From contig OZ037766.1 of assembly GCA_964035545.1 (NCBI GenBank), positions 12,204,722 through 12,268,721 of the forward strand: a stretch of 64,000 nucleotides of DNA, read 5' to 3'. Made by a program: the position numbers and the translations under genes. Below the pieces are notes generated by a model, which searched no databases, was not told the DNA's origin, and saw only the letters and a list, made by a program, of their open reading frames with translations. Numbering within the stretch: the first letter of the stretch is position 1; each line of letters begins with the position of its first letter. Below are positions 3,001 through 62,900 of the stretch, piece by piece. The DNA comes from Bugula neritina (Eukaryota; Animalia; Bryozoa).

Positions 3001-3678
3001 AAGGAATGTCAATTGGTAAAGTGAGAATGGCGGCTGACACTCCCACTGATGAAATGACAATGGAATCTCAAGGTGTTCTCCACTCTCAAACTGGCACTGG
3101 GGAACATGCTTCTCAAAAAGGCATGAATATGGGCTATACTTGGCATGCTGGTGATCATCCCTTGGACAACTTCTCTCAAGAATCACAAGGAATTCTACAT
3201 CATCAAACTGGTACTGGTGAACATGCTTCCCAAAAAGGAATGTCAATTGGTAAAGTGAGAATGGCAGCTGACACTCCCACTGATAAAATGACAATAGAAT
3301 CTCAAGGTGTTCTCCACTCTCAAACTGGCACTGGGGAACATGCTTCTCAAAAAGGCATGAATATGGGCTATACTTGGCATGCTGGTGATCATCCCTTGGA
3401 CAAATTGTCTCAAGAATCACAAGGAATTCTACATCATCAAACTGGTACTGGTGAACATGCTTCCCAAAAAGGAATGTCAATTGGTAAAGTGAGAATGGCG
3501 GCTGACACTCCCACTGATGAAATGACAATGGAATCTCAAGGTGTTCTCCACTCTCAAACTGGCACTGGGGAACATGCTTCTCAAAAAGGCATGAATATGG
3601 GCTATACTTGGCATGCTGGTGATCATCCCTTGGACAACTTGTCTCAAGAATCACAAGGAATTCTACACCATCAAACTG
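1..3678 (+). repeat. Coding tandem array, 234-bp unit (78 aa = two diverged calponin repeats), about 15.7 units
   Basis: Near-identical 234-nt units with no stop codon; ends at donor ACTG|GTAATT (3678/3679). Confidence 0.97.
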
Positions 3679-9600: not shown

Positions 9601-12600
9601 GCATTGGCTTACTTTGTAGCTCAGGCTAAAAACTGTAGAATAGTATTGCTAAAAGTTCTTGATGAAAATCATCTGCTACATTGACTTATATCAGTCTAAT
9701 TCTCACGTAACAAATGATGCACTTCAATCATAAGCCTCAATAGCCTATCTGTAATTTGTTACATTTCATGTAGTTGCATTTCGGGCTGTTAAGCACACGT
9801 ACCCGTATTACATATCATAATTACATCAACAATTACCCCCTGTGCTATGTGCTCAGTGCTAGTGAATGTCCAGTATTAGGATTTAAGTCAATGGAGGTGA
9901 ACATGATTATGACTATGTAATGGTTCCAGGTGTTAGTGCTGCTCAGCTTAGGAGGAGGGCCAACTCTGAAGGAAGAAAGTCTCGCTTTGCAAACACTTTT
10001 AGTCTCTTGTCTAAGTTGCCTAAACATCAGCAACAAACTGGTAAGATGGGAGATTTGCACAGATTCATTTTATTTCAATTATACACTTAACAGGCTTTTC
10101 TGATCTAGTCCAACTTCTTGCCTTTTGCCAAGTGCAAAGTTTTGTAATTGTGTCATCAAATTGTGCTTCATTTATACATGCGAATAGCAATTGACTTTTG
10201 TCAAGTTTATAGATGACTGGTTTAAATGATCTTTACAAGAGTATTGTGCATTGAGATCTCCACGTTTAATCTTACTTATTAGTTTTATGCATGTGTTTTA
10301 GGCACCACAGTATATCGTTATCCTAAAGGGGGATTTCTGGAACCCGGTAGAATATTGAGAGGGACACGTGATGATCAATCCATATTTACGTCTACTCAGT
10401 GGGTAGATGACTCCAATATTGTTCATGTTAACACATCAGGTTTGTTGTTTAATTTAAATTCCGTATGTTATATTCATATTTTATTCTTGTACCAATCTCT
10501 CTTAAAATAGCAAGAAATGTTACTTTGTTACCTTGACTTAAATAATATTATAAATCAGAATTACTGTAAGTTTGAAGTTGCTAGTAAGCATATTAGCATC
10601 TGTGAACTTTCAGTTGAAAGTTAAGTTGTTGGAATCAGCAATTCATATAGTGCACAATAATTTTTACCATGCTAAGAATTGCACTCAAGCTAAGCCTCAG
10701 CGCTATCAACCTGAAGCTGTTTCTACTAAAATTGATTTTTGAAATGCAAATAGCAGCCAATAGCATTGTACAATATGGTTGAGTCTGTGTGGGGATAATT
10801 ATTTATTGTTTTATTTTAAAATACTTTACAAGTTTGCTTACTTTAGTCACACTGATTTTGCAGGTGATAAGTTAACAGAGAATTCTGCAGAGGACCTGCC
10901 AGAGTCGGGTGTGATTTCTACGCAGATTGGTAAGTTACTAGATAGCACTATAGAGTATACACTATAGTCATAGCTAGGTAGTACACACTATAGTTATAGC
11001 TAAGTACTACACACTATAGTTATAGCTAAGTAGTACACACTATAGTTATAGCTAGGTAGTACACACTATAGTTATAGCTAGGTAGTACACACTATAGTCA
11101 TAGCTAAGTACTACACACTACAGGTGTAATTATACTGTATATACCACACTCATGGCAATACAGCATGCAATGCTATAATAAAGTATGCTTTTACAGCATA
11201 CATCACAATCATTGCTGATGAGTTGTTGTCATTATGTAAATACGACATTATGGAAGAAAATTCAAATTATTCGCACGGTTTCAAAACTTTTAGATTTAAA
11301 AATATCAGGCTATAAGTGTTCGATAAGCTTCTAGTTATTTAACAGCATAATTGGTTTTTGACAAGTGATCTTTAAGCTCTGGATTTTAAGAGTATGAATT
11401 TATTAGTTGAAATAATTTTTCTAAGATGCTTACTTTCTTTCTGCAGATGTGAATGGTCAGCTGGAAGAGCAGGCGTATGTGACTCATGTAGTGTCTGAAG
11501 GTCCGTTTGTAACCACCCGTACGCTGAGTCATTCTTACCAGCAGTTGCCCGGCACATCAATCAGATACGTCACTCAGCTCGCAGCAAATGCACCACCTTC
11601 ACTTCACAGCCAACACCAGTCACCTTCCCGGCAACCACAAAACAGAATCCGGGTAATCAACAGATCGCTCTCAGCCAATGCGCCCAGAGATGTCAGGATT
11701 GGTAGAAAGGTACAGCATGTAACCTATCAGCAGCCAGGTAACATGCAGCTACATCAAACAACCTATCAGCAGCCAGGTAACATGCAGCTACATCAAACAA
11801 CCTATCAGCAGCCAGGTAACATGCAGCTACATCAAACAACCTATCAGCAGCCAGGTAACATGCAGCTACAGCATACAACCTATCAGCAGCCAGGTAACAT
11901 GCAGCTACAGCATACAACCTATCAGCAGCCAGGTAACATGCAGCTACAGCATACAACCTATCAGCAGCCAGGTAACATGCAGCTACAGCATACAACCTAT
12001 CAGCAGCCAGGTAACATGCAGCTACAGCATACAACCTATCAGCAGCCAGGTAACATGCAGCTACAGCATACAACCTATCAGCAGCCAGGTAACAATCAAA
12101 TGCAGCTGAGAGCTTATCAAGAGCATGCTGAATCTTATGCCACTATCGGAGAGCCAGTCAAGATTGGTAATGAAGCTTATGTTTCTATGGATAGAAATGT
12201 AATAACAAAACCAAAGTCTGTTCTATCAGCTGACGGCAATAATCAGCCTATACAGGTTTCAGGAGATAAATTTATCAGAAGGAGACTTAACTTAGAAGAG
12301 TCACCTCCATCCCAACAAAGTCGTTCAATTGTCATCAGAAGGTCTGGATCCAGAGGCGGGACGAGAAAGCGGTTTGAATACCCAAGCGGTTATACAATGG
12401 CTCCGAGATTTGCTGAAGGTGGTGAGTCATATTTGTCGGTGGCCACAGCAGGAGCACAGCAACCTCTGCATTCTTCAGGCGGTGTGACTGTTGTGAGAAA
12501 TACCGTGACAGAGCAGCCTGGTGACAGTGGTTCCAGCACTACTAGGCAAACCGTGCGCAAGAGCTACCACCAGGTGGCAAGTATGGAGGGTCTGAAGACT

Positions 12601-15189
12601 GAAGATATTCACAAGGCCATGGGGCAGCTGTCTTGGGAAATGCTGCCAGAAGGTTATACTCATTATATACTAATTGTGGTGTATGCGTGTAGTACTGTAA
12701 GGCTTAGGGTGTATCTGGTAACAGCTATGTTTTTATGGCGCATCTTTTTAAAATCGTATATTGATTTATTTCTGGTGTAATATAAATCATACTCATAGTT
12801 AACCAAAATAGCACTGCTAAGTACCTCAATAATAATAGAAGGGATGTTGGGCATGTGTAATTTGTTTAATTTGTAAATTTTAGTCCTAATATTTGTTGTA
12901 AGTTTGTCAGAATTTAAAAAATGTGTTTCTGACACTTCTATTGCAGATCAAGGCTCCAACACTGTGCAAACTCGCACATTTGTAGACGAAAACAGCTCTA
13001 AAAATGGAGGAAAATCTCTAGTGACTGAGACTGTGACAGTGTATTCTAGCGATGGTAATTCTTTCAGTATACATCTTCATACAGCGTCATACATTGTATT
13101 TTAACTCGTATGGCTGCTTTGTTTGTACCTTTGGATTAAAATTTGATCATATCTTCACTATTGACAAAACCTGGAATTTTTAGCCCTTGTAAAATACATT
13201 CTTCTACTTGTACATAAAAGTAGCCATAAAAGAAGTACATAAGATAAATAAGAATAGTAAAGTAGCTGCATAATACATGATAAAAATAAAGCAAAAAAGG
13301 ATACTCTGACAGCCAAAATTCTAACATATTTCTTAGAGTAATAACTGACACACAAACTTTGGAAATAAATTTCTGGTTTAATAATATATTAATTTGCAAT
13401 TGATAATTAATTTTTTTGCTTCTAAAAAATAATAGATAGTTCAACTTCAACTTTATTCCATAATTTAATTGAGCATTTTAGATCAAATGTATTAATAAAT
13501 ATAAATAAATAAATATAAATGACCTAACAACTTGAATTTTCCTGACATTGCTATTCAGAAATGTTTTAAAAGGCACACCAATATGTAGTAAAAGTGTGCA
13601 AACTACCTCCTTGTAAATTCTAGTGTGCTTTGGATAGACCTACTTGATTCGTATGAACATTTATTTAGAAGAAAAGTTCATCTATATTACAAAGAATATA
13701 ACACATGAAAACATTCACCGAATTTGTCACACTGGGTGTAGTTGCTTACAATATTGACTCGTGTTAATTTTTCAGCATTTTTGTAAGATGCTCATTATCT
13801 TAAATTTCTCAAATCTAGCCAGGGTTACCAAAGTTTACATGTTCAATATGATTATAAAGGGGTCATTACCTGGCACAAATATGTGTATATAATGTCTTTT
13901 CTACATAAATAAATCATAAGTGATTAGTAACTTGTTGTATTGTTCTTATTGTAGAAGCAATCAAATGAAGCAAAACCAACTCTTGCTGCATGTTTAACTA
14001 CTAAAACTTTTATCTCTTGCATTTTCTCTGCACATATTTAATAGATCTGCCTGTCAAGAATATCATAGTACTTAGTTTTAGTTTTAAAGTGTTTGTGTGT
14101 GTCTTGGTGAGCTGACAGTGATGAAATTTGGAAATTTGGCTTTGTTTTTGCACATGGAACGTTTGCTCCAGAGTGTATTAAAATGATGGCATGTTTTTTT
14201 GTAATTTGCACAGCTGGCACTGCTTTTTATTTTTTTACCTTTCAAGTAAATTTCCATCAACTATACACTGTTAATAATAGCATTGAAACTTATATAAGTA
14301 ATCAACATACTTGATTTATCCATTGTATATAATATCAGATATAATTTATAAAACAGGTACTAACAAGTTTGCCTCGCAGAAGGGGATGAGCATGGGCGCT
14401 GTCCGCCATGTTGCGGATATTCGCGCTGACGAGATGAATCAGGACGGACAGGGAGTCATCACATTGCAATCAGGTGATGATCTTTATTTCCACTGTTTGT
14501 TTCTCACTTGATCCAGCAGCAACTTCCAACTTTAAATTAGTATTGCGCTTCGTGTTATGGCCTGTTCACACTACAGTTTAATAGCAGCTATGAATGCTCA
14601 CTTTCAGTTGTAGTGTAAACAGGCCATTATTCAGTCTTGCAAATTGTAAGTAAGATAACCAAGGCTGCTTCAAAATCATTGATAGAATAATATGTACAGT
14701 ATATCTACAGCCGTCATAGCATCGGCATTTTATGGGTAATTTTAATTATTTTTTTATATCCTGTCTCTTTACAACATTATTTTCTACATTTTGCATTCAT
14801 TACATCACAATCGTCATGCCTGATTATTAGCTAATAATCTCCAAGTGTATACATCAAGTATGAGCAAAAAGACATAGCAATGCAGAATATTTTACTGCGC
14901 AATCTATCACTATAATATGTAAGGGTATTCAATTGTTATGACTTATTGATTTTTTTAATTTTCAGGCACCAACAAATTTGCTTCACAAAAAGGCATGTCT
15001 ATGGGTGCTGTGCGTCATGTAGCCGATATTCGCGCAGACGATATGAATCAGGAAGGTCAAGGTGACATAGGGCTTCAAGCTGGCACTAACAAGTTTGCTT
15101 CTCAGTCCGGAATGAGTTTTGGAAAAGGAAGAGGTGTTAGTGATATTAAAATTAGCAAAGTCACTGATGAGCAAGATATGATGTACTAA
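1..15189 (+). CDS. Giant calponin-repeat (CLIK/UNC-87-like) actin-binding protein, 5' end outside window, multi-exon
   Basis: Repeated motif QxGTNKFASQKGMxxGxxRH (calponin family repeat) with 39-aa period. Exons with AG/GT boundaries, all introns phase 1: <1-3678, 4756-5691 (8x117 nt), 5851-5967, 6076-6192, 6381-6497, 6990-7106, 7881-7997, 8115-8231, 8430-8546, 8763-8879, 9247-9363 (each 117 nt), non-repeat exons 9930-10040, 10302-10439, 10864-10929, 11447-12652, 12947-13054, then 14357-14473 and 14966-15189 (TAA). AATAAA near 15600. Confidence 0.9.
10945..11121. repeat. 26-bp intronic minisatellite (cactatagttatagctaagtagtaca), about 6-7 copies
   Basis: Directly visible, starts about 15 nt after the donor at 10930. 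Confidence 0.9.
11722..12093 (+). repeat. Coding 39-bp minisatellite (TYQQPGNMQLQHT), about 9.5 copies
   Basis: Directly visible within exon 11447-12652. Confidence 0.95.
14558..14626. mobile_element. Very small (69 bp) PIF/Harbinger-type MITE
   Basis: 18-bp TIR TGGCCTGTT(C/T)ACACTACA with 1 mismatch, TTA on both flanks. Confidence 0.7.
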
Positions 15190-29191: not shown

Positions 29192-29999
29192 GCGACACTG
29201 CCTTTGTTGCCCACTACCATCAGCAGGCTCAAGAAATCATCACCCGTTTTGCAAGATCTGCCAAAGACTTTGGACTAAAGATAAATATAACCAAAACAGA
29301 GATGATGTATCAACCACCACCAGGAGAACATGATGAGAGAGAAAAAATCAGTATAGATGGAGAAATCCTCAACAAAGTCAAGAACTTCAAATACCTTGGC
29401 TCAACCATCACAAACAACAACAAACTTGATCAAGAACTCCAATTGAGAATGTCAAAGCGTCACAAACTTTCGGAAGGCTACGAGAAAGGGTTTGGGATAA
29501 CGGAGACCTGACAACCAAGACGAAATGTGCAGTCTACCAAGCCATTGTTTTATCTACACTGCTATATGGAGTGGAGTCATGGACAGTCTATAAGATCACG
29601 GCACACAAGCTAAATACCTTTCTTATGAACCAACTAAGACAGATATTGTCAGTGAAATGGTGGCACTTTGTATCTAATATGAAGATCCTTCAGAAAACCA
29701 ACACTACCAGTCTATATGACACCCTCATCCAAAGAAATCTAAGATGGGCCGGACATATCAACAGATTAGACAACACCAGGATCCCAAAACAGGTTTTATA
29801 CTCACAACTAACAGAAGGCTCCCGTGACATCGGCAGACCGAGGCTCCGTTACAAAGATACCATTAAACGCAACCTTAAAGACAAGGGGATATCTCTCAGC
29901 AAATGGCAAAAGCTGTCACTTGACAGACTCAGATGGAGACAAATGATACACCAGAAGTCATAGTCGGACACGACAGACAGCAAGATGATAATGATGATG
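29192..29999 (+). mobile_element. 5'-truncated RTE-clade LINE (C-terminal RT region), one frameshift
   Basis: FGLKINITKTEMM...FKYLGS...LLYGVESW...LRWAGHINRLDNTRIPKQVLYSQL..G.R..GRPRLRYKD; (GAT)n tail; TSD atgcacat at 29184-29191 and 30000-30007. Confidence 0.92.
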
Positions 30000-30655: not shown

Positions 30656-31214
30656 TAAACAGCTACGGGACAGATTAGGCAAAGCAAGCGCGGCTTAGGA
30701 ACTCTGGAACAGATATGTATCCATCAGGGTAAAGTGTAAAGTCGACAGAGCGGTGGTGCTGGCAAGTCTGCTGTATGGAGAAGAAACAAAGATAATATAC
30801 AGGACACAGGTGAAGAAGCTAGATTTCATGATGAGGCAATTGAGAGACATAATGGCTGTAAAATGGTATGACAAAATAACGAATGAAGAAATACTAGAAC
30901 GTGCCAACTTGCCAAGCATGGCTCACATTCTTATAGAAAAGAACCTGCGATGGCTAGGCCGTGTGCACAGGATTAAAGATAGCCGGCCACCAAGACAATT
31001 GCTCTACTCTCAGCTGAAAGACGGCAAAAGAAATAGAGGGCGACCTATGCTCAGACTTAAAGATGTTGCTAAGAGGAATATGAAATGGAGATCAATCAAC
31101 TTGAGTTCCTGGCAGCAGACGGCTGACAACAGAGTTGCGTGGAGAGCTGCAACCAAATTCAATCGGAATCCAGGAAACAGTTATGGTCGTATCGACTGTC
31201 TGCAAGAGAAAGAG
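30656..31214 (+). mobile_element. Second 5'-truncated RTE-clade LINE (different subfamily)
   Basis: LLYGEET...LRWLGRVHRI..SRPPRQLLYSQL..GKRNRGRP.LR.KD; AG-rich tail; 12-bp TSD actcatagtgct at 30644-30655 and 31215-31226. Confidence 0.9.
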
Positions 31215-32234
31215 ACTCATAGTGCTGTACTAACAGGAATAGTACGGTTATAAATTAAACTTTAAATATAGTAGTAATGGGACTAGGATGTCTTAGGCCT
31301 AATTATTTGGGGCTAATCTATGTGACATATGTCACTTTAATCTATTTACTCTTTGTATTGTCTTTGATAGTTTATGGGCAATTTCACAATCAGCTGTTAT
31401 GTAATGTTATTATCATATTATGTTAATTTATGTTGACACTGGTCACTTTTGTTACTGGTGGTTATTTGGATGTGCAGCCAGTATTTGTACAGTTGTTGGG
31501 AGTTCCAGTAAATTGGTTATGACTATTTTAATATAGAGAAAGCTATTTAACTACAGCTATTATATTTATACATTACAGTAGGGGTTAGGCCTAGCTACTG
31601 AGCACCGGTGATCTGACATAGTAACTGTGAAAGGCTAGAATTCGATTATAAGCTAATAAATCTTAGTATTAGATTTGCTATGGCTCTGCCACTGTTGGTG
31701 TTACTAAAATTATCATTGTGATTGTAAGTTGCTCATAATGATCATTCTCATAAAAAATCAAATTAAACGCAGCTACTCAAAAAGGCAATTGCTATTGTCT
31801 ATCTATTACATAAATAGTTAATTGAAGTATCTGCAGTAGCCAGTGTTCGAAACACCTTGTTAAGGAATGTAGGTAGTAGGTACATAGATACACTTCACAT
31901 GCATTGTGCTATTATTTTTAGAATCTGTAATATTTTAAAGATAGCCTCGTGCTATTCAATACAGGGGAAAACTTAGGTTTATTTTGGAGCTTTATTGATC
32001 TGATTTAAACTTGCAAACCTTTACTATTTGACTATGTTCTTGAATTTGAAATAAATAGCTGTCCTAATTGTTAAATCGAAACCTGGCAACTGGTTATAGA
32101 CTTAGGGTTTTTTGAGAATTTTTTTCTTCTGTTTGGTTTACAACTTTTCTTAATAATTGCAGAAAAAATTCTTGGCAAAGCAAAAATGAGAAAGATTTGA
32201 CAGAAATGATCAAGGATTAGATGAGCTGAAGACC

Positions 32235-46325: not shown

Positions 46326-48539
46326 AAATATCTAACAGCATTTATTTGATTGTGTTACATATCCTAATGTGATAAACACTTTTAAATTTCTAGTGTTCAC
46401 TTGTAGTATTATTTTATTTGACTGAACTATTTTCAATATTTCACTATTTTAGCAAATTGTGTTTTATTTTATATGTTATGTAATCCTTTGCCTGCAAATG
46501 GTGGGATAGTTAGTAGATACTTTTATCATCATTGTGCCATGCCAGTGTATTATTGTAGTGTATAGTAGTAATATATTAGTGCTAGAATTCATATAGTATT
46601 TCAAGATATGTGATTATATTTGAGAATTTGCAGTAGTTAGAGGTTTAATATGGAATAAGAATTGTATAAATATTTGACATACTGTATAGTGCAGTATATA
46701 ATATATGTTATATAATATTGTGATATGGCAGTTTCAGTATGCAGTACGTTTTACATGCAAACCTCCATGTGTCTATCTATTGTAATCAACTGTAGTACTA
46801 GGACTATTTTTATAGCTGTAAAAATGCTCAATTTTGCTAGCGTTCTACTTATTCCTATATAATAAACTGCCAGTGCAATGCTTGCCTATACAAAACCTTG
46901 CAAGAATGATGTTCTATCTAATGTCTAGGGGCTGAATTTTTCTCTAAACTACAAACCTGCCATGGCTAGCTACAATGTCTATACTAGAAATAAAGAGCTG
47001 CCTGATTTATATTATGCAAATTTCAGTGTGTATACTTCATTAAAATAATCGTACTCTCTCCATTCTACCTGCTTATAAGCCAAGGGTAAAATATCTTTAA
47101 TAAAAGAAGCCATTATTAAACACATAATCTTCATTCTACAATCAAAAATTAAATAGAGAGAGAGTAGTGACAACAAATTGCCTTCTTAGCTTTGCCATGA
47201 GAGGCTGGAGTGCCATCTGTACCAGAAATAGAAAATAACTAGCTTGGCTAGCATTTTTATAATGCAGCCACTCAAAACTTTAATGACAAAGAATTATAAT
47301 GTAAATACATACTACACTAAGCTATGAAATGATGCATTAGCAACAAACAAGATATAAATAAACTGTTTATTTAAAATAGCAATGATCTGTACACTGCTAA
47401 AAATTATCAGAAGTTGAAGAGAAGAGATACACCTGGTTGGAATATGTCAGTTTAAATGCAATTTTCCGTCTCAGTATTTCATTCAGATCAGTGCAGTCAA
47501 AACATAGATACATTCACAAATTCTTTGAATATTGTCACTATCCCAGTGACTATAATGACGTGGCCACCAATCAATGGCTATAACCTGACAGCAGCCTATT
47601 CAAGTGTTATATTATATAAAATACAGTCACATTCAATGATCATGGTGTTGTGGGTATGCCAGTTATCCCCTTGGGGGGTCAAGCATGCAATTAGATTTGT
47701 GAACAGATGAACCTGGACTATGAATATTATTTTGACATTAATTTTAATGAATAATGATTATTTATAGAAAACTATTATGATGGGTGTACAACTCCAATAG
47801 TATTAGATTATTGACTATTGAACACATTTGGTAATTAATAAATGGTTGGAAATATTCAAGGGGTGCCATACAAAAGCTCCCACCCATAATGAATTGATTT
47901 AAAAAATAATTTTTCCCTGGCCAGAATGTCAAATTAAAGAACTTGTGCTTTATATATATAAATTCTCATTATTGCACCTAAATGCTATATTCAATTTCAC
48001 GAAGTTATGATTTATAGTCTTTTCTTTAAAATTATCAATTTAATGCATCAAAACTGGAGTTATCAAATTAAAAATCTATGACATTCCCATCTACACTATT
48101 GCATCAGACAAAAACAGCTGTAAAATACTCAAAAATGTTTTTAAAGTTACCATAATAACCCCTAGCAGTTCACTACCATAGAGCATGAAAGATAGTTATG
48201 GAGGTAAATAACAAAAATGACCACACCTCATGCACATTGGAATTCATTGTATGAGTTGGTATCTAAATCACAACAGCAACAAGTCCCTACAGCAATTCAA
48301 ACATAAGGACATCTTTATGGGTAAATTGGACACTGTGAAGGTAAATAATGCTGACCAATGTAAATATTTTGCTAACTATAATTTTATATAGTTAAAATTT
48401 TACTTTAACAAGACTACAATGCTGTAGTTATAGTCTAATATAGATTGCCCAAAAATTTTAGTACGTTAAGCCTTGCATAAACTGGTGCATACTTAGCTAT
48501 TGCGACATGTACGCAAATACTGCAGCACTGTCAGAATAG

Positions 48540-49700
48540 GGGTGTGAGAGTATATAATGTGGGCGTGAGAGTATATAATGTGGGTGTGAGAGTATATAAT
48601 GTGGTTGTGAGAGTATATAATGTGGGTGTGAGAGTATATAATGTGGTTGTGAGAGTATATAATGTGGGTGTGAGAGTATATAATGTGGTTGTGAGAGTAT
48701 ATAATGTGGTTGTGAGAGTATATAATGTGGGTGTGAGAGTATATAATGTAGGTGTGAGAGTATATAGTGTGAGTGTGAGAGTATATAATGTGGGTGTGAG
48801 AGTATATGATGTGGGTGTGAGAGTATATGATGTGGGTGTGAGAGTATATAATGTGAGTGTGAGAGTATATAATGTGGGTGTGAGAGTATATAGTGTGGTT
48901 GTGAGAGTATATAATGTGAGTGTGAGAGTATATAATGTGGTTGTGAGAGTATATAATGTGGGTGTGGGAGTATATAGTATAGGTGTGAGAGTATATAATG
49001 TGAGTGTGAGAGTATATAATGTGGGTGTGAGAGTATATGATGTGGGTGTGAGAGTATATAATGTGGTTGTGAGAGTATATAATGTGGTTGTGAGAGTATA
49101 TAATGTGGGTGTGAGAGTATATAATGTGGGTGTGAGAGTATATAATGTGAGTGTGAGAGTATATAATGTGGGTGTGAGAGTATATAATGTGGGTGTGAGA
49201 GTATATAATGTGTTTGTGAGAGTATATAATGTGGGTGTGAGAGTATATAATGTGAGTGTGAGAGTATATAATGTGGGTGTGAGAGTATATAATGTGGGTG
49301 TGAGAGTATATAATGTGGTTGTGAGAGTATATAATGTGGTTGTGAGAGTATATAATGTGGTTGTGAGAGTATATAATGTGGTTGTGAGAGTATATAATGT
49401 GGTTGTGAGAGTATATAATGTGGGTGTGAGAGTATATAATGTGGTTGTGAGAGTATATAATGTGGGTGTGAGAGTATATAATGTGGTTGTGAGAGTATAT
49501 AATGTGGGTGTGAGAGTATATAATGTGAGTGTGAGAGTATATAATGTGAGTGTGAGAGTATATAATGTGGGTGTGAGAGTATAGAATGTGAGTGTGAGAG
49601 TATATAATGTGAGTGTGAGAGTATATATAATGTGGGTGTGAGAGTATATAATGTGGTTGTGAGAGTATATAGTATAGGTGTGAGAGTATATAGTATAGGT
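48540..49700. repeat. 21-bp minisatellite (gtgagagtatataatgtgggt), about 55 copies
   Basis: Direct; explains the three long repetitive ORFs here. Confidence 0.97.
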
Positions 49701-49960
49701 GTAGGAGCAAGTGATGCAATAAGGTTATGAGAGGTAGTAATTGCCATAGGAGAATGCATGAATAGTGACTAGGAGAGCAAATAATAGAGGATTGAGGGTA
49801 ATAATTATCTGAGACTGAATAATGAAGGTATGAGAGCAAATTATATATCTATGAGAGCGTTTTGTGAGCATATTATGAGGAAAAATATAGCTATTAGATA
49901 TTATATTGTAAGCATAGGAGATAAAATAATGAGTGAATTTTTGACCATTTAGCTCTCCAT

Positions 49961-50253: not shown

Positions 50254-50532
50254 AGCCTTTCCTAGTGCATTGTATTATATAATGTGTTTAAGAAACATGA
50301 TATATGACAAAATTTTATTGGTTGAATTTTAAGAATGAAAATTTAATAATATATCTTTTTGTAAGAGCAACTATCTTTGAACTTATTCATTATTATTTTG
50401 GAAAAGCGCTGAGCACGGTCTTTAAAATCTTTACAGTCAGAATTAATGGCTAAAAACAGTACATCATTTAAATTAGGCTAATTTTTTGTCAATTATAAGT
50501 GAAATCAAAAAATGTAATGTTTTGTAAATGCA

Positions 50533-53155
50533 TCACCAACGAATACATACAAATTCGCAATACTGTTGTCCTGAAACTGTGTGACATTCAAAGACCATTT
50601 CGAGACAAAGTGTATACCCCCGCTTGACTCTGCTATTTGAAGCTGAAGTAACTTTTGTATCTGAAATTAAAAACAAGTATGTTAACTAAAATCCATTTGG
50701 ATTCAGCACTAATTGAAATAACAAGATGTTAAATTATTTAAAATAGTAGCCAATATTATTTGTGCAAATGGACAGGCCAGGGCGGGCCCTGATGCTGAAA
50801 AATACCCAGCATTACCAAAAAGATGAAAAATACTAAAACGTTTTTTCTTGTTACAAATGTGTTGGAGTTTTTATCTAAATTTTACAATACAGTACTCCCC
50901 CTGTATCTCGCTAAGCTTTGGGTCCTGAAACCTCAATTTGCGACATAGTAGAATACCGGATTTAACTCACGGATCCAGTAAATTTGGCCATTTTGTCCCT
51001 AAACACACATACATGAGCCACAAAACCGAAGTCAAAACCATTCTTGTTACTTATGAAATTTTGTGAAAACTTGATCCGTGAGATATGGAGGGAACACTGT
51101 ATATTATAAAAGTGAGATATGGAGGTAACACTGTATTTAAAAGTGAGATATGGAAGGAACACTGTATATAAAAGCTGTAACTACAAGCAAGATAGTTACC
51201 AGAATCTCCTGTTGGTATCACAATCATCCATTTATACCCATTGGTGCACTCATTCTGCACACGTTTAGGAAGGAAACTGACATCTTGCACGAACTCATCG
51301 AGTACTTTAACATCTACTTCTGCGTCTTCCTCCTCTATTTCCTGGTCACCAAAGTTGTCCAGGAACTCCGACACCACATTTTCATTGTTGGCTTCATTGA
51401 ATGTAACAGGACTAATATAGCAGATGCCTTTATCAGCTCTGATTACACGGAGACCCTAAATAATTTGTATATGCATAGATTTCACACAGAGCACTACTGT
51501 TCATCATATACATATATGCTATATATAGTAAAACTACACAACTCTATACAGTCATACGTCCCCATGCTTCGCATTAAGCAAATGGATGTTTTATTCCATG
51601 CATGGAACAGTGTCAATTGAATGACCCCGCAACCACACATGCCAATGCAAAATTTCATTTCATGTGGGAGCTTATTGTAGGTGAAGTGAATATATTACTA
51701 CATTGAATCAAATAAATTTGCAAAAACTTAAAAAGATATTAAAACTAAAAAAATATGTTTACAAAATATCTGCATAATATACAGGTGCATAAACAGGTAC
51801 ACAACAATTTAGTAATCTTGCCTCTTTCATTTATAAGTGAATAGCACTCAGAAATATTTTAACCTTAGTACATGATATAGACGCTATAACAGACACATAT
51901 CTACTAACACTGTGCACTATATGTACTATATAATAGGCAAGATCTCATACTATTCAACATATATATGAGCTGCATCAACCACTATTTACCTTTTGAAACA
52001 AATCAGCATGAAAAGTACCATCAGCTCGGTGGTAGTATGCCACATGTTCATCTTTGTTCAGCATAACCTGATCCTTCACCTATATTGTACACAAAGTCTT
52101 GTTAACCATTAGCCTCATTTCTAATATTTTTATTATACATAAACTTTTAAAAACAACATTGCTATAAATTCACGTAATTAAAATCCAATACTCTTGCATT
52201 TTATCAACATTATATCTGATTTTATTTATTGCTTCATTTCTATTTTCAACTTTTTTTAAAATTCAAGATTCTTTTTAAATTTATTGTTTCTATCTTTACA
52301 CTCAACACCTCCAGCAGTGACTACTGTTGTGTAGGCAAATAGTACTGTGACTTGCTGTTTATTGGTATACAAAACCTGGTCAAATACATTATAGTAAATT
52401 ATTCGTAGTTTTTTATATAAAAAATTAAATTTATAAAATACTACAACACTATTTTAAAAGTTGTAAAAATTTGATGTTTTCAACATCTCTCTGGTTTCAT
52501 ATCACAGAACCAGCAACTTTTATGATAGATAGTTATAGTGTTCCTTTAAGTTCTTACACAGCTCAATGGGGATGTATCAGCATAAGTTGAAATAATTCAA
52601 AGAAGAATTTTAGGTTGAGAAAAAATTTATCCGGGATAACAAATACATAAGAGTTGATAATATTTTAAACTCTTTACTCACATGTTGGTTGTCAGGAGTT
52701 CTAATGTTAACAGTTGCCTGGACATCTGCACTCACTCTGGTCGTCTTCTCAGGTTCTTTCTGCTGGCAAACTGCATGAGTTTTAGTCAGGCCCATGTAGA
52801 TAACGGCTGACACAGAAACAACCAACAGAATGGAGATAACCAGCAAGGAGACTCCCAGGAGCTTTGACTTGTCGCTTTTCTCAACCATCTGTGAACACAC
52901 AATTGAATGAATTTCCAATGTACATAATAATTTAACCTAATTATAAGTTGCTATGTTTTAAAAATCCCAATAATAATTTGACTCAAACAATTCAGCTTGA
53001 AAAAACTTTGCTAAAATTTAAAAGATATTGCCAATAAGTTATTGAAAATTTTATTTGATGGTTCTCAAGTTATAAAGTTGATATAAATGTAAGAGAAAGC
53101 TTGCCTTAACGTCTTCGAATGTCTGTTTGTCCGAGAAGTTCATATTAATCTTCAT
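50533..53155 (-). CDS. Type II membrane BRICHOS-domain precursor, copy A (243 aa), releasing an anionic 28-aa four-Cys peptide
   Basis: Exons 53155-53105 (GC donor), 52888-52682 (TM LLGVSLLVISILLVVSVSAVIYMGL), 52079-51990, 51455-51200, 50660-50533 (TGA); 732 nt in frame. BRICHOS-like motifs FQKGLRVIRADKGICYI and FLPKRVQNECTNGYKWM; furin site RVKR. Confidence 0.85.
50890..51164. mobile_element. Tc1/mariner (Tigger-like) MITE in intron 4 of copy A, right end triplicated
   Basis: TA|CAGTACTCCCCCTGTATCTCGC ... GTGAGATATGGAGGGAACACTG|TA (50890-51099); the terminal ~32 bp recurs twice more to 51164. Confidence 0.7.
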
Positions 53156-54039: not shown

Positions 54040-55200
54040 CTGCATGGCATTTCCCAGGAAGAATACTGTTGCTATCAGTGTGCTGTGTATCGGGTACACC
54101 AATTCAAATGGCATGTGAATTTTGAAATTAATTCGCATACCTCTTCCAGTTGCAATTGTCTGTTTTGACTATCTGGCATCACATTTTCTTGTTTGGATAA
54201 AAAGTTGCAGCATACACTAATGGGTCAATAACCTGTTTATAGCTTTTCTTCTTTGGCACGTTTGGTTGTGAATTGGAGAGTTATATCTTCACAATCAGTT
54301 GCCATCCAAGACCTCTGCAGGAATTTTCCACGGTAAAAAATAGATGTGGAATGGTTAGGTAATACGTCAAGTACTCTTCTTTCACAATTACAAAGCTTTC
54401 AAAAGTTATAAAAAAAGTCACTAGGAGGGTGAAGCAACATATTTCAAGTAGAAGGTATTGCATAAACTAGCAAATTCCTGACTGGAAAATGTGGGTAATG
54501 ACCTGTAAGAAAAGTTGCACATACAGCCTCAATAGTACAGATGTCCTCCAATACTTGCATTGTTTGCTATTAATTATTTGCCTAATATCCTGTAAATCAT
54601 GAGAAATTTGAACAATTAATACGGAAAAGCTACATCTTACTCCTGAAGAGTCAAAGGAAATCTACATGTGCGAGTTTCAATTGTAGGATTATGGATCTGC
54701 TGTGATGGTGTTATGACACACGGCTTTCGGTACAGATGAAAATAATGCTTTGGAGTAGCTGTCAAATGAATGTACAGGTGAACAGCTGCGGGGACTTAGA
54801 ATTCGAGCTGGTACTGCATCAATAGAGAAATTGAGAAAAGTCTGTGTTCTAGATTAAGAATTTAGCAAAATAAGTTAGATTTTTGCAAGAATTTCAACTC
54901 GAGCCCCAAATCAAAATTTAATAATAAAATTAAAGAACTTAGGCGGTCTCAATTTCTCCACTACTGCTTCTAAGTGCAGAATTCTAGTTTGTATCTGTTA
55001 AGTTAGGCTAATACTACAGCAAGAAATTGGATGCTTTTAAACTCCTGGCAAACTTTATAAGATTTTCTGGCCAGCTCAATATGGGATTTCTTCTTGATCA
55101 ATCACTATGACAGCACAACTCCTACTCCATAAAATGAACTATTGTGTTTAGTTATAGTGTGCTAGGCTAGCGGCATTGATGATGCTGTTCTATAGCTAGG
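54040..55200 (+). mobile_element. Possible heavily decayed LINE remnant
   Basis: Scattered fragments resembling RT-downstream motifs (VKY, DWK, DYGSAV) in several frames with stops; weak. Confidence 0.25.
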
Positions 55201-55802
55201 TAAAAGTTTGTCCAAATTTTTCTGACTTTGTAAACAAAATATCACTCGTGAGGAAGTTATACAGCAGATCGCAGTTTCATCTGCAGAATTGGAGACGACA
55301 CACCAACATATTGGAGATGATGGGATCATAGCAGACACACCAACATTGGTAATGAAACAACCATTGCAACAATGGAAGTCTAGGATTCTGGGTAGTTTAA
55401 AGAGAGTCGCCAGAAAAGAATTTGTTGGCCATTTCCGACTCCTAATTGTTAATGGTATGACCCAAATGTTCAACAGTGTTTAAAAAAGTTACATATGTCT
55501 AATTGTATTTGAAAACTATGCTTCTGAAGTGCTGCAATTAAATTTGGGAGATAAGTTGGTGTTATTGTTCTGTTCGGTCCACTAGTCCACTGTATTCCGT
55601 TATACAGCAACTCCTGGAAATTTCTAAGGTCAAGGTGTTCATGCAGGCTGTTAAAGCTGAGGTGAGCTATGGGAAACTCCAAAAGCACATTTAGTTAATA
55701 ATATTCAAATAAAGCATACTGATCATGCACTATATAGCTGTCTCGTGTCGTATTTTAGGCTCAAATTGTAAGCAAACATTTGTGAAGTAGAACTTGGTGC
55801 AG

Positions 55803-56108
55803 GGTGTCCAAATGGCACAGGTAAAGATGGCACAAACGGAAAGGTGGGTAAAAGTGGCCCATTTTGAATATTGGGGTTTGAGGTGGAGGCTTGGGGATTT
55901 AGGGTGGAGGGTTTATAGGTTTGGAGTTTGAGGAGTTGAAAAAATTTAACATTAGCATGCCATATTTACCTACTTTTCCGTTTGTGCCATTGTTACGTGT
56001 GCCATTGTTACCCGTGCCATTATTACCTGTGCCATTTTCACTGGGCCATTTTTACCTGTGCAATGTTTACTTGTGCCATGTTTACCCGTGCCATTTATAC
56101 CTAAAATT
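55803..56108 (+). mobile_element. Foldback element, same family as 49961-50253
   Basis: GGTGTCC start, AAATGGCAC repeats, GTGCCATT repeats, ...ACCTAAAATT end. Confidence 0.7.
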
Positions 56109-57470
56109 GAGTGTAGAGTTGACCTTCTCTAAGCCAGCTCAATATTTTTTGCAGAGTAGATGCTGCGTAGTAACATAGCATAACATTTATAGTAGACTGT
56201 AATAACAAAAGAACAACATTAATGCAGTTAAGTATTAATCATGATTGAGTTAATAATTTATGTATGTGTAGCTCGAAAGATTATAGTTAAACTGGTGAAA
56301 AGTTTAATATATTATTATAAATTGCATAATAACTTTTTGCAGACAATTTATCACATTTACAGGCACAAAAAATCTGTTAGCAAAAAAGTAACAGAGTCAG
56401 TTAATTTGTGTTGCTTTCTAGTTATCTAGTTTTTTATAACCAATTTTATTTTTTATATTGTTTTGCTAGTTATTTCATAGTTATATAATAATATTGTACA
56501 AGTAGTAATCATGTGTTCTTCGTTAGTTGAACTTGTTTAGTTAATCTGAAGTAGTTACTTATTAGTTATTGCTGTTACATTTTTCCAAAATATATTTAAT
56601 TAAGAACTGGTATCAAAGGGGTTATTGTTCAGTGGGAACATTCGATGTGGCCAGATAAGTTATGTAGTAACAAAGTGTGACAATTTCAATCCTTTGCATG
56701 GCTGTGTTAGGCAAAATAGATAAATACTCTAAAATGTTGTTTAAATTACTATTATAGTGCTTTAAGCCATTCACTGCATAGCCCTAGAGTAGAAAAATAG
56801 TAGAGGTAGGGTAAGAATGGCACCACCTCATTTATATTCAGATAGCCACATACCCAATAGTTAACACAAGGTATATAAACCAAAACAGCCACAACTTATA
56901 ATCTAACAATTCCACTTCATCATAAATAAGGATATTCTATGAGTAAATGTGACAGTTAAAGTATGCAGGTGAATGTTGCTGGGCATGATGTGTAAACCAG
57001 TTTATTAATTATAAGTTTATACTTGGGATCTCAGGTTCAAAATCCCAAATGCTATTTTATAGCTAATGCAGTATATTTATGAATTCATAAAGGCCATCAG
57101 GTTAGAAAAAAGTAATTTTATTAGAAACTTTTAAAAGGAAAATTTGAAATTTTTTGATTACTTTAATGGATTATATCAAAGATGCCATTATTTATGGTTA
57201 TCTTTTGAAAGCTTTATTGCTAAATAAAATGCATAAAAATGGTACAGTCAACATAAGGCTAAATTTTAACCAATAAGCAAAACAGGAAAATATTATAATG
57301 CTTTGTAACTCACAAGTTTATTCTCAATAGATAAAGCACACTATATCAAAGCTGAAGTTCAAAATAGAAAAATTTTAATTATAATTTTATAGCTTGCCAT
57401 ACTTTTAAACACAAATCATAAATTTATATGAACTCTTAGCAGCCTTAAGCAATATTAAAAGACTTTTGGC

Positions 57471-59864
57471 TTATCCTCTAATAGTACATATACGACGTAC
57501 ATAACAATAAGCTCTCCTGAAAATGATGTAGCAGTAGTAGCGATTGTAGCAACTGACTCGGCGTTTAACTCTTCCATGGGTAGCTGAAGTAACAGCTGCA
57601 TCTGGAATAAAAAGGCAATCTCATTGAAAAAAAATGTCTACATTCAACAGTAATTATATTAAAAAACAAATAGAAAAATACAAGTTATTATACTAAAAAG
57701 TCAAAAGGAACTAAAACTTTCAACCTCGCTGCAAACAATAGGCTTGACTTTTGGTGAACTGTAACAGGTGAACTAAACAAGATAGTTACCAGAATCTCTT
57801 GTTGGCATCACAATCATCCATTTATACCCATTGGTGCACTCATTCTGCACACGTTTAGGAAGGAAACTGACATCCTGCACGAACTCATCGAGTACTTTAA
57901 CATCTACTTCTGCGTCTTCCTCATCCAGTTCCTGGTCATCGAAGTTGTCCAGGAACTCCGACACCACATCTTCATTGTTGGTTTCATTGAAAGCAACAGG
58001 ACTAATATAGCAGATGCCTTTATCAGCTCTGATTACACGGAGACCCTAAACAGGTTGTATGCATAAATTTCACAGAACCATGCATACATAGCCGACCATA
58101 TAAATATATATAACATATAGTGAAACTACAATACTTTGCATGGTCATATTATGCCACAATTCCAAACCGACTTGCATACATATGCTCAAAAAGATTTTAA
58201 AACAAAAAACTATGCATTGACATAATCTAAGCAAACATAAGCACATATAGCCTATTATATATAGAATTTATATATGTGTAAAAATTTACGTACGATGCAA
58301 GCTTTTATTTTATTTAGAGAATAGCACTAGCTACTTTCACTCAGAAAGAGTCGTACATGATATACACACTGTAGCTGACACATATCTACTAACACTTTGC
58401 ACTATGTGCACTATATAATAGGCAAGATATTGCATACTATTCAACATATGTATGAGCTGTATCAACTGCCATTTACCTTTTGAAACAATTCAGCATGAAA
58501 AGTACCATCAGCTCGGTGGTAATATGCCACATGTTCATCTTTGTTCAGCATAACTTGATCCTTCACCTATATTATACACAAAGTTTTTTAAACCATTAGC
58601 CCTGTTTCTAATATTTTCATTATATATGAAAATTTTAGTAGCAACCTCCCGCAGAATACATGTATAATTAAAATAGAAAACCAAAATTTTTACATTTCTG
58701 TACCAATATTATGCCTGATTTCATGGATTGTGGAACTTTAATTTTCAACTAAATATTTACTAACTGTTTTCTTTTGGCAATATTAATTTAAATGATTGCT
58801 ACAAATCTTATACTCAAAGCCTGTAACATCAATCTTATAGTATGTGTACCAACAGCCATACTGGCAACTTATATATAGATATACAGAATTTTTGCTAAAT
58901 ATTTACAGCAAATCACTCAAATCTTTATGCAAGAAAACGAATATAAAACACTGCAATATCATTTCAAAAGTTAAAAAAGTGTAATATCTTAAAACATGTG
59001 TGTGGTTGCATATTACAAAACAAATAACTTAATCATGAAAAATAGTTATACTGGCATGAGTTGAAATACTCTTAGTTCAGCTATATTGTATAATGAAATT
59101 AGACTTCAAGTTGTATAGGATAATGTAAGCTGAACGATTTTTTGGTGCTTTTAACTTGCCAAAATATTTTAGTTAGCAAATGGACATGATCATATACATG
59201 TTTTACTTACAGCTGCATGTGGATGTACTGGCACTAGTTGAAATAATTCAAATAAAAACTTTAGGTTGAAAAATAATGTGCTGCAAACAATGTTTATATA
59301 GCATTTTCAATTTACCAAAATAGCTTATTTGCTAGATAACAATTGCACAAGAGTTGATAATATTTTAAACTCTTTACTCACATGTTGGTTGTCTGGAGTT
59401 CTAATGTTAACAGTTGCTTGGACATCTGCACTCACACTGGCAGTCTTCTCAGGTTCTTTCTGCTGGCAAACTGCATGAGTTTTAGTCAGGCCCATGTAGA
59501 TAACAGCTGACACAGAAACAACCAACAGAATGGAGATAACCAGCAAGGAGACTCCAAGCAGCTTTGACTTGTCGCTTTTCTCAACCATCTGTGAACACAA
59601 AATTTAATGAATTTCTAATCTACATAACAATTTAACCTCATTATAAGTTGCTATGTTTTATAAATCACAATAATAATTTAACTCAAATAATTCAGCTTGA
59701 AAAAACTTTGCTATAAAATTATTACTTTGTTTAAATTAGTAATTAAAATTAATTGGTAATAATTAAATAAAAATTTTATTTGATGATTCTTTAATTATAA
59801 AAATAAAGCTTGCCTTAACGTCTTCGAATGTCTGTTTGTCTGACGAGTTCATACTAATCTTCAT
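57471..59864 (-). CDS. Type II membrane BRICHOS-domain precursor, copy B (244 aa), releasing a cationic 29-aa four-Cys beta-hairpin candidate antimicrobial peptide
   Basis: Exons 59864-59814 (GC donor), 59588-59382, 58566-58477, 58045-57790, 57601-57471 (TAA); 735 nt in frame; exons 1-4 same sizes as copy A; last exon DAAVTSATHGRVKR-RVSCYNRYYCYIIFRRAYCYVRRICTIRG*. Confidence 0.88.
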
Positions 59865-59880
59865 TCTATGAGCTCAGATT

Positions 59881-59916
59881 GAATGATTTTAACCAAAATA
59901 ACTGCAGCTTTTTATA
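59881..59916 (-). promoter_or_regulatory. TATA box plus Initiator of BRICHOS copy B
   Basis: TATAAAA (59916-59910), TCATTC about 30 nt downstream, ATG at 59864. Confidence 0.75.
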
Positions 59917-62900
59917 CCAGCCTGTCTCACTTGGGGGCAGAGTTTTGTAATAATTATGTTGAGTAATTGCCAAAGAAGAAAGATTATTTTAAAGATATGA
60001 AAAGGAAGCATATTGGCAATTTGAAAAATATTTTGGCAAACAATAATTTAAGTAGGGCAATTAAAAGCTGAAATATAAAAAGAAACTTTCCCACATGTTT
60101 TTCCAATGCCAGTAGTTTTCCGTCATGCTATAAAAAGGGGAAACTAACTTTTCTAATTTTAAAGAATGCACATTTAGAATAAGTAACTCATGCCAAATTA
60201 TGAAAATAAATAGTCTTTAATTTGTTTTAGTTTTTTAATGCCACATCCTTTCTACACTAAAAATGAATAATCAACAAGGCAAATTCCTCAAAGATACGAA
60301 GTTTGCACTCACAAAAATTTAAATTGGTTGTTTGTATGATAATGGCAATTTACATTAAATATAGTGTAGGCTATATTATGTAGCAATTCTGCAATTTGTA
60401 ATCAAATTCTTATACCAAATTCCTCAAAGATACAAAGTTTGCACTCACAATATTCACATTTAGTTATTTGGAGAATAATGGCAATTTACATTGGATATCT
60501 TGTATATTATATAACCATTATGCAATGTAATAAAATTCTTATACCAATATTTTTAAAGTTTTGTGCATTTGCTATATATGTACATTATGCTAAAGCAACA
60601 TCTTACTTGTCACATCAACAGTTATGCTTTATATTTTCATAAATCTGTTGCAGAGTCTTACTCAAAGAAATGTGCATCTTTTAAAAAAGGTGAAGCTAAA
60701 CCTAGATTTGCAATAATGCATATTTATAATGTAGTATTTTATATAGGAAAAAAATAATAGGCCTATCACTTTTTGCTATCAATATAGTAAACAAAACTAT
60801 TAAGTTGAAACAAAATGAAAATTTTTGATGGTAGCTGTAAGTCAGATTACAAGTAACTCTCGTATCCATGGTGACAGTTATTAGTAGCACCATGTTTTCC
60901 CATTTTGAAATGTTGCATTATATGTCAAAACCTAATTTTTGGTTAAATATGCAGATTCATTTTGCATTATATAATTATGTATACACATTATGGAAACAAT
61001 GACTGGAAACGTGTATTTTTATAGAAAACAGATGCGTCTGAGCTATTACTTTGAAGATCTCAATTGTTCGTTTAATTTTGACGGTTTGGCAAACATTATT
61101 TTTACCATTCGCTTATAAAAAAGTGAATTATAATATATATTATTTCTAGCTTAACATTCATAAATTGCAAATTGTAATACACTACGTTTCTAAGCCTCGC
61201 ATTATGCAAATCAATTTTTCATTCTATGTTTGGACACAGTTGCATCAAATGAAACCACAACGATAAGTTCATACATGCAAATGCAAAGCAATAGAAAGGC
61301 ATTGTTATAAGGTGCAGTGCTTGTTCTAACTAAGCCCTAAGCCCTAAGACAAATGCGCTGGTTTTGTTGGTGCCATTTTATATAGATACTTCCCAGGTAG
61401 ACACTAGGTTTTCTACATGAAGCTTTATTTTGGTACGATATATTTATTTTGTTTGTGCATGGTTTAAGAAGCATGTAACTGGGATGATACCCTTGTTTTG
61501 GGTACTTTGCGTTTAGGATAAATTACTAGAATATGATGCTTATTGCACCTAACCAGCTCCTCGAACACAAATTACAATGTTGGTTTGAGAACAATTGTCT
61601 TTTTAAATTGACTTTAAATAATTACCAATTTAACGTATGTCAAGAGTGTTTCACCAGAGCAATTTTGCAAGAAAGCAGTATGAATGTTTTACAAATGAAA
61701 ATACAATGTAGGTGTTGATCACAGTCAAATTTTCTATAAGTTGATGAACAAAGAGCAAAGAACAGCATGGATTAGGATTGAGTGTAGATTCAGACCATGC
61801 AGCCTGCGATGTGAAAGATACTCATCAGAGCTGACTGATGCGTAAAATGTATTATAAAACTACTAACTATACTCTTAACAAACTATAATAAAGATATTAA
61901 TGCCCTCCCATTGGTTGATATCAGTTCCCATTAATGCCTTATTGGATGAGTGTGCATATATTGTAATATCCTTGCAGCAGCAGATGCTTTTACATCAAAA
62001 GAGTTGTTCAAAATCTATTGCATTTGGCAAAATAATATTCTCTTTAAATTTAATTTTGCCAATTATTCAAGTTTACAGCTCAACTATAATTTAATAGATC
62101 TTTTTAAAATAACTGCAAGAATTTGTTGCATCATTTGTCAAAAGGCATTTAGATGAAAAAACTATCTTTTGGCACACGAAAAGTTCCTTATTGGCTGGAA
62201 AGTTCATGATTACAGATTTTTTCCTCAATTATGTCAAACATATCTAAATGAAAATCTGCACAGATATTGATGGCTTAGGTATTTGGTTTATAAAGATATG
62301 TTATGTTGTTTTTTCAGCCCATCAAGCTTATACACTACTGACTACACAAGCGAAAATGCTCAATAAACAATTCGGATGAAATCACATCCTTTCCTTGTCT
62401 GCTTCAACACTATCTATAATAATTACAAAGCCTGGTTGTATAAGTTACACATGTCTTGCATGACCTATTGTAAAGAATTGGTATCGTTATTGTTATTATC
62501 GAAAGGATAACTCCTCGTGGCTTATTCCCTATACGCATCATGGCACGATGTCTACAAGTTCAACAGATCAATTATCGTAACAGCTGACAATTGTAATGCG
62601 TATAGTCTCTCTTATACTCGGCTGGACAGTAATTGCTAGCTACTAATGTAAGCTGTGAAACAAGGCAGGACTAGTCAATTAGGAACAATAGCTAGCGTTA
62701 GTAAATAGCCAATCAGCTTAGTAAAAGGTTTAAATAACTTGTGAGTAGTTGGCGATTAGCCGGCAGAGTGGATCGAGTTCTGATAATGTAAAGTTGTGTG
62801 TAAATCACTCTCTATTATGTAATCGTGTGTACTAGTGTTAACAGTTTTATTTCTTATATAATTCGCAATAATGAAGTCTATTCAATTTGTTCGAAATCTG

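Follow-up and report, generated by a model that had tools for sequence, protein, structure and literature searches.

A spliced BRICHOS precursor gene of the bryozoan Bugula neritina with a candidate cationic beta-hairpin antimicrobial peptide in its last exon

The window, a 64,000-nucleotide stretch of Bugula neritina chromosome 2, holds part of a cluster of five tandem BRICHOS paralogues (A to E) located within about 34 kb. The gene studied here, paralogue B, is located on the minus strand and encodes, after splicing, a precursor of 227 amino acids whose C-terminus is formed by a predicted 29-residue peptide (57560-57474). The peptide has seven arginines, six tyrosines, no aspartate or glutamate and a net charge of +7. 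Its four cysteines are spaced C-x5-C-x8-C-x5-C, and its last residue, a glycine which may serve as amide donor, is directly followed by the TAA stop (57471-57473). It is preceded by a furin-type RVKR site (57561-57572); the R-x-K-R motif is common to all five paralogues and to P0003 of the bryozoan Watersipora subatra. The initial annotation, which gave no strand, had described a 29-mer after RVKR with the same Arg and Tyr counts, no acidic residue, the same cysteine gaps and a terminal Gly. Translation of the minus strand bears out all of this, and a plus-strand reading of 57474-57560 was rejected, as it gives no such peptide. The pattern combining R-x-K/R-R, four cysteines and a stop was also searched for in 300 shuffled windows. 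It matches exactly twice in the real window, at the target peptide and in paralogue A, and never in the shuffles, so the peptide is not a chance occurrence.

The precursor is encoded by four coding exons of 207, 90, 256 and 131 nt (228 codons including the stop) separated by introns of phases 0, 0 and 1, all on the minus strand. Exon 1 (59382-59588) codes for 69 residues comprising the initiator ATG, a short basic N-terminal tail, a hydrophobic helix at about residues 12-30 and a linker. Exon 2 (58477-58566; 30 residues, phase 0) continues the linker and begins the BRICHOS domain, most of which, with its two cysteines, is encoded by exon 3 (57790-58045). Exon 4 (57471-57601, the acceptor AG ending at 57602) follows the phase-1 intron and is the only one to carry the peptide, preceded by a short linker and the cut site. 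Both coding introns upstream of exon 3 are confirmed by RNA-type contigs from four runs of three studies. In two of these runs a GC-AG intron (RNA joint 59588-59814) connects exon 1 with a 5' untranslated exon, of which 59814-59847 is seen. The join between exons 3 and 4 is supported indirectly, by its recurrence in the NCBI model of the paralogue A orthologue (KAF6027297.1, P0036). A stand-alone small ORF was rejected, since the peptide lacks a separate start codon and is in frame with the BRICHOS exon of this spliced precursor.

The order of parts in the precursor is a transmembrane helix, a linker, a divergent BRICHOS domain, RVKR and the four-cysteine peptide. The hydrophobic N-terminus expected of a secreted or membrane precursor is found in a 19-residue window (residues 12-30) with a Kyte-Doolittle mean of 2.74, and the pro-region is anionic, with 20 D/E against 8 K/R in exon 3. 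The target exons were searched singly; the full-length homologues P0003 (Watersipora) and P0036 (B. neritina) served as proxies for the joined precursor, which itself entered no search or fold. Exon 3 matches the Pfam BRICHOS profile PF04089 with E=0.008 and 16.8 bits, below the cut-off of 25. Language-model (ESM) features place P0003 and P0036 next to BRICHOS clusters (0.92 and 0.89), all ten best matches belonging to the BRICHOS family or clan, and the UniRef label of P0036 is BRICHOS domain-containing. The top three Atlas folds for the AF2 model of P0003 are all BRICHOS (TM 0.35-0.47), and PDB fold and profile searches with the same model (mean pLDDT 50.7) gave no clear assignment, with Z 5.0 at ranks 31-32 in the fold search. 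A Pfam BRICHOS scan of the whole genome gave no match anywhere, its controls being likewise blank. Since several individually weak lines converge (Pfam, language-model features, Atlas folds and the UniRef name), we accept a divergent BRICHOS domain with two conserved cysteines, which would place the precursor in the BRICHOS superfamily.

Paralogue A (50532-53138, minus strand) has the same exon plan, and its last exon (50660-50532) codes for an anionic (-2) four-cysteine peptide with gaps of 6, 8 and 3 residues. Its orthologue in a second B. neritina isolate is P0036. Paralogue C is broken: its exon 3 has lost 13 nt, and the acceptor of its exon 1 reads AA. Paralogue E codes for a Tyr-rich cargo of charge -1. 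A and E, which are both intact, thus have anionic cargoes, and these lack the terminal Gly. Paralogue D encodes a peptide identical to that of B and is located outside the window, on the other arm of an inverted duplication whose near arm spans 54203-60414. That D is an assembly artefact is unlikely, given its inverted orientation and the identity of only about 90% between the arms over 6.3 kb.

Exons 1-3 of the paralogues are 90-99% identical in DNA, and their last exons are 59-70% identical between types. Between the two isolates, nonsynonymous change in paralogue A reached 17% of sites in the cargo against 2.8% in the scaffold (about sixfold, Fisher P=4e-5), all cysteines of the cargo being kept. 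Judging from these comparisons, the cluster keeps its scaffold almost unchanged, whereas the cargo exon diverges rapidly. Exon 4 of B and D differs by no nonsynonymous and one synonymous change (5.9 expected, P=0.003, against the synonymous rate), and over exons 2-4 there is one nonsynonymous change where 22.7 are expected. Intron 3 and the 3' flank have diverged by about 8%; an unchanged peptide amid such flanks suggests purifying selection, and gene conversion could contribute to the identity.

Several other peculiarities of the cluster were noted. The first intron of paralogue E (G000:C2, about 12.287-12.288 Mb; 82190-83640 in window-extended coordinates) is about 1.25 kb longer than those of its siblings and has a different acceptor context. 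Just downstream of paralogue A, positions 48493-49839 are occupied by a G-rich minisatellite with a 21-nt unit and a GC skew of 0.66, which is much shorter in contig L023 of the second isolate. In the same isolate, the interval upstream of gene A (L026, 1-7280) is filled with LTR-retrotransposon-like DNA.

Single-sequence AF2 prediction on a 30-mer gave a hairpin (best model pLDDT 93.7, the models ranging from 59 to 94) with strands at residues 2-14 and 17-29 and a two-residue Phe-Arg turn. In the predicted register, C1 is opposite C4 and C2 opposite C3 as direct cross-strand pairs on the same face. This supports the nested C1-C4/C2-C3 pairing which the initial annotation had proposed, naming structure prediction as a check. 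The cystine face would consist mostly of cystine and aliphatic residues plus Asn, one Tyr and one Arg, while the other face is a Tyr/Arg ladder. The cationic, disulfide-locked beta-hairpin typical of BRICHOS-type antimicrobial peptides (BRICHOS-AMPs) is thus found in the predicted structure. The exon 4 peptide gave no candidate among 5.8 billion proteins in a search limited by the short query, and no match to PDB sequences at E<=10 or to Pfam. Fold searches with the 30-mer returned generic hairpins only and named no family.

Two cut options had been offered for the release of the peptide, after RVKR or after RVKRR. The first Arg of the peptide aligns with the G, E or Q that follows R-x-K-R in the siblings, which supports cleavage after RVKR as the conserved position and disfavours the form one Arg shorter. 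Arenicin-1 and alvinellacin likewise start with Arg. PAM-like and furin/kexin-like genes are present in the B. neritina genome, with PHM-like exons at C2:31613662 and C2:1685732, so both the C-terminal Gly and the PAM that an amidated peptide would need are found at the sequence level.

The precursor shares many features with the polychaete BRICHOS-AMPs alvinellacin, capitellacin, arenicin-3/abarenicin, HfBRI-25 and HfBRI-29. These include a hydrophobic N-terminus, an acidic linker and BRICHOS region, a dibasic or furin site, a C-terminal cationic Arg-rich hairpin with nested C1-C4/C2-C3 disulfides (predicted in the target), a phase-1 last intron before the peptide exon and a tandem multigene family (PMC4002450, PMC6780910, PMC9410094, PMC10745061). 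The intron phases 0, 0, 1 agree with the alvinellacin-like plan, but the target has three coding introns and not five. The same phases occur in ITM2B and may therefore characterise the superfamily as a whole. Reports of BRICHOS-AMPs come solely from polychaete annelids (PMC6780910, PMC11767717), polychaetes being the only hosts in the former review, whereas the target host is a bryozoan. The target peptide is also longer (28-29 residues, gaps 5-8-5) than the polychaete two-disulfide peptides of 20-22 residues, and its terminal Gly suggests amidation, unlike in the polychaete family. In Alvinella it is the BRICHOS domain that varies, the peptide exon being monomorphic (PMC5431198), which is the reverse of the Bugula cluster. 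Precursors of UuBRI-21 and of the Heteromastus filiformis HfBRI set resemble that of the target in having a short N-terminal piece, a transmembrane helix, BRICHOS and cargo, and, as in Bugula, one species carries many different cargoes, some of them not cationic. The Bugula scaffolds differ in being 90-99% identical tandem neighbours, with cargo charges from +7 to -2.

Likeness to tachyplesin, polyphemusin, gomesin and alvinellacin had been noted at the outset, and it is alvinellacin, with its BRICHOS precursor, for which it holds. The other three are chelicerate Arg/Tyr-rich two-disulfide hairpins of 17-18 residues, whose C-terminal amide is paralleled by the target Gly, but the likeness lies in the fold only. 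To our knowledge, their precursors have no BRICHOS domain. Membership of the target in these families was rejected in view of its 29 residues, the absence of a PDB or Pfam match and its BRICHOS precursor, and the precursor layout places it with the polychaete kind instead. Fewer than 30 families of beta-hairpin AMPs have been described, mostly of 11-25 residues (PMC13001179). The proposed greater length of the hairpin stands against the 17-18 and 20-22 residues of the peptides above, but HfBRI-29 is already a predicted 29-residue two-disulfide BRICHOS hairpin (PMC10745061). ITM2/Bri2, chondromodulin and tenomodulin, the nearest Atlas clusters by features and fold, are type II membrane proteins, as the target precursor probably is, and share with it BRICHOS, a furin site and a C-terminal beta-hairpin client. 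The clients of these proteins are conserved and have no known antimicrobial role, whereas the Bugula client is hypervariable and multi-copy.

The closest full-length homologues were found in B. neritina itself and in Watersipora subatra. All homologues retrieved were bryozoan or unassigned metagenome sequences, with no annelid precursor among them; JGI metagenome scans with exon 4 gave no match, but the exon 3 scan was equally blank, which makes the negative result uninformative. The Watersipora precursors carry aromatic-rich four-cysteine tails, most of them neutral or acidic (charges 0 to -12), and those of the P0003 group also end in Gly. As paralogues A and E are anionic too, most of the family is unlike classical AMPs. 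Cationic Cys hairpins do recur at two related metagenome loci, L020 (+6, gaps 4-12-6) and L018 (+3, six cysteines), in support of an antimicrobial reading. The family profile also finds at least six more loci in B. neritina, and in five of these the tails are Cys-free beta-strands. In a tree built on exon 3 alone, with no annelid row and weak deep nodes, A, B, D, E and P0036, which are the five intact rows of B. neritina, group as a single clade (100/99); the cationic cargoes are located on separate branches.

Some members of the wider family deserve mention in their own right. Distant BRICHOS genes at L012 4036-6800 (G000:C2:29.41 Mb) and L040 each have two candidate last exons downstream, encoding short Cys-free alternating beta-strand tails. 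More B. neritina BRICHOS genes are located at L038, L039 (C3:22.52 Mb), L046 (C9:7.90 Mb) and L047 (C6:11.02 Mb). The C3 and C9 copies have cationic Ile/Arg/Lys alternating-strand ends; the C9 copy appears to have a frameshift in exon 3, and the C6 copy is highly divergent. In a related gene (L030 2615-2827, L031), the last exon encodes a brief collagen-like Gly-x-y stretch and, after it, a tail rich in Gly and Cys.

All BRICHOS-AMP features accessible from sequence are found in the target, the intron pattern matching in part (three introns against five). By analogy, we consider the peptide a candidate AMP which shares the build of the polychaete BRICHOS-AMPs and probably also their mode of action. 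Gene plan and conservation, together with the modelled fold, point with a probability of about 0.6 to a membrane-active defence hairpin whose release by furin, probable amidation and activity we infer. The precursor would enter the secretory pathway via its N-terminal hydrophobic helix. The acidic BRICHOS domain would then hold the beta-prone cationic tail and prevent its aggregation or early action, as the biology of other BRICHOS proteins suggests (PMC10182729, PMC4002450). Two cross-strand disulfides are predicted to lock a hairpin of 13+13 residues, a furin-type convertase would cleave after RVKR, and PAM could convert the last Gly to an amide, giving a 28-residue amide of about 3669 Da in oxidised form. 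Once released, the hairpin could attach to anionic bacterial membranes and permeabilise them in the manner of arenicin, alvinellacin and capitellacin. Family context alone is insufficient for this reading, because the same scaffold carries anionic peptides in two intact siblings. It also counts against an antimicrobial role that BRICHOS proteins in general have a beta-hairpin client at the C-terminus and that Bri23 is not antimicrobial (PMC6780910).

The same tails could instead serve as secreted, self-assembling beta-sheet building blocks of a cuticle, adhesive or surface film, kept soluble by BRICHOS until release. In that case, the Tyr-rich tails would undergo cross-linking or stacking, and siblings of opposite charge might assemble together through charge complementarity. 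This would suit the prevalence of aromatic-rich yet neutral or acidic tails, their content of 54-71% beta-forming residues, the Cys-free alternating strands at other B. neritina loci and the general role of BRICHOS as a chaperone of amyloid-prone clients. We nevertheless consider it unlikely, since the target has the complete cationic amphipathic hairpin profile, and the fast nonsynonymous change of the cargo, the pseudogene copy and the tandem turnover point rather to an immune effector. Such features, pseudogene copies included, are more typical of immune effectors.

Just as improbable, in our view, is an effector of defence or symbiosis that is not mainly membrane-lytic and acts by agglutination or trapping, LPS binding, fouler deterrence or selection of the microbiota, as proposed for alvinellacin. 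The anionic and neutral siblings, which evolve equally fast, do need a non-lytic role, and alvinellacin is reported to shape the epibionts of its host, but a +7 Arg/Tyr amphipathic hairpin fits the descriptors of the lytic class (PMC13001179).

Since RNA contigs confirm the scaffold introns, the BRICHOS family of the cluster is spliced and probably transcribed. In exon 3 the contigs resemble B most (three mismatches) and in the untranslated exon they match A/B, but from the scaffold they continue into an E-like, sibling-type last exon. Exon 4 of the target gene was not covered by contigs from the four runs, which derive from other animals. This suggests that in other animals a B-like scaffold may be joined to an E-type exon, and the DNA upstream of gene A in the second isolate, closest to the E-type 3' flank (92% against 86%), points the same way. 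These observations, together with the 70% identity of exon 4 to the E exon (the frame differing locally through indels), might indicate an intact but silent or barely expressed gene, recently derived from an E-type exon in this isolate and without a current role, but this is the least probable alternative, as the B and D protein is nearly unchanged over exons 2-4, the splice sites are intact and contigs from other animals can show presence but not absence.

Returning to the candidate defence hairpin, it would be of a known kind of precursor and peptide (BRICHOS-AMP-like) in a new phylum, diverse cargoes and a 29-residue hairpin being known already from Heteromastus. In the literature covered, which is incomplete, no bryozoan BRICHOS or AMP study was found. 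We tentatively speculate that bryozoans possess a BRICHOS cassette system, in which one homogenised chaperone scaffold is combined with quickly exchanged or remodelled last exons encoding cationic lytic hairpins, anionic hairpins or Cys-free beta-strands. The peptide might then be the first gene-encoded bryozoan antibiotic found, and BRICHOS-AMPs would either be older, with a wider lophotrochozoan origin, or have been invented independently in bryozoans. For a host that produces bryostatin, the peptide would provide a candidate immune effector with which to study its management of microbes. Siblings with switched charge on a common scaffold also make a natural experiment on which clients a BRICHOS domain tolerates. 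As a 28-residue peptide is cheap to synthesise, the antimicrobial claim is directly testable.

Elsewhere in the window, a very long calponin-repeat protein is encoded on the plus strand at 12-6221; it includes a 1230-residue ORF (12-3704) with tandem units of about 78 residues (PF00402, E=2e-13). Short plus-strand ORFs at 29571-29963 and 30753-31253 resemble, by eye and with no clear Pfam match, C-terminal fragments of LINE reverse transcriptase. A further plus-strand ORF (11449-12780) codes for 443 residues with Gln-rich 13-residue tandem repeats.
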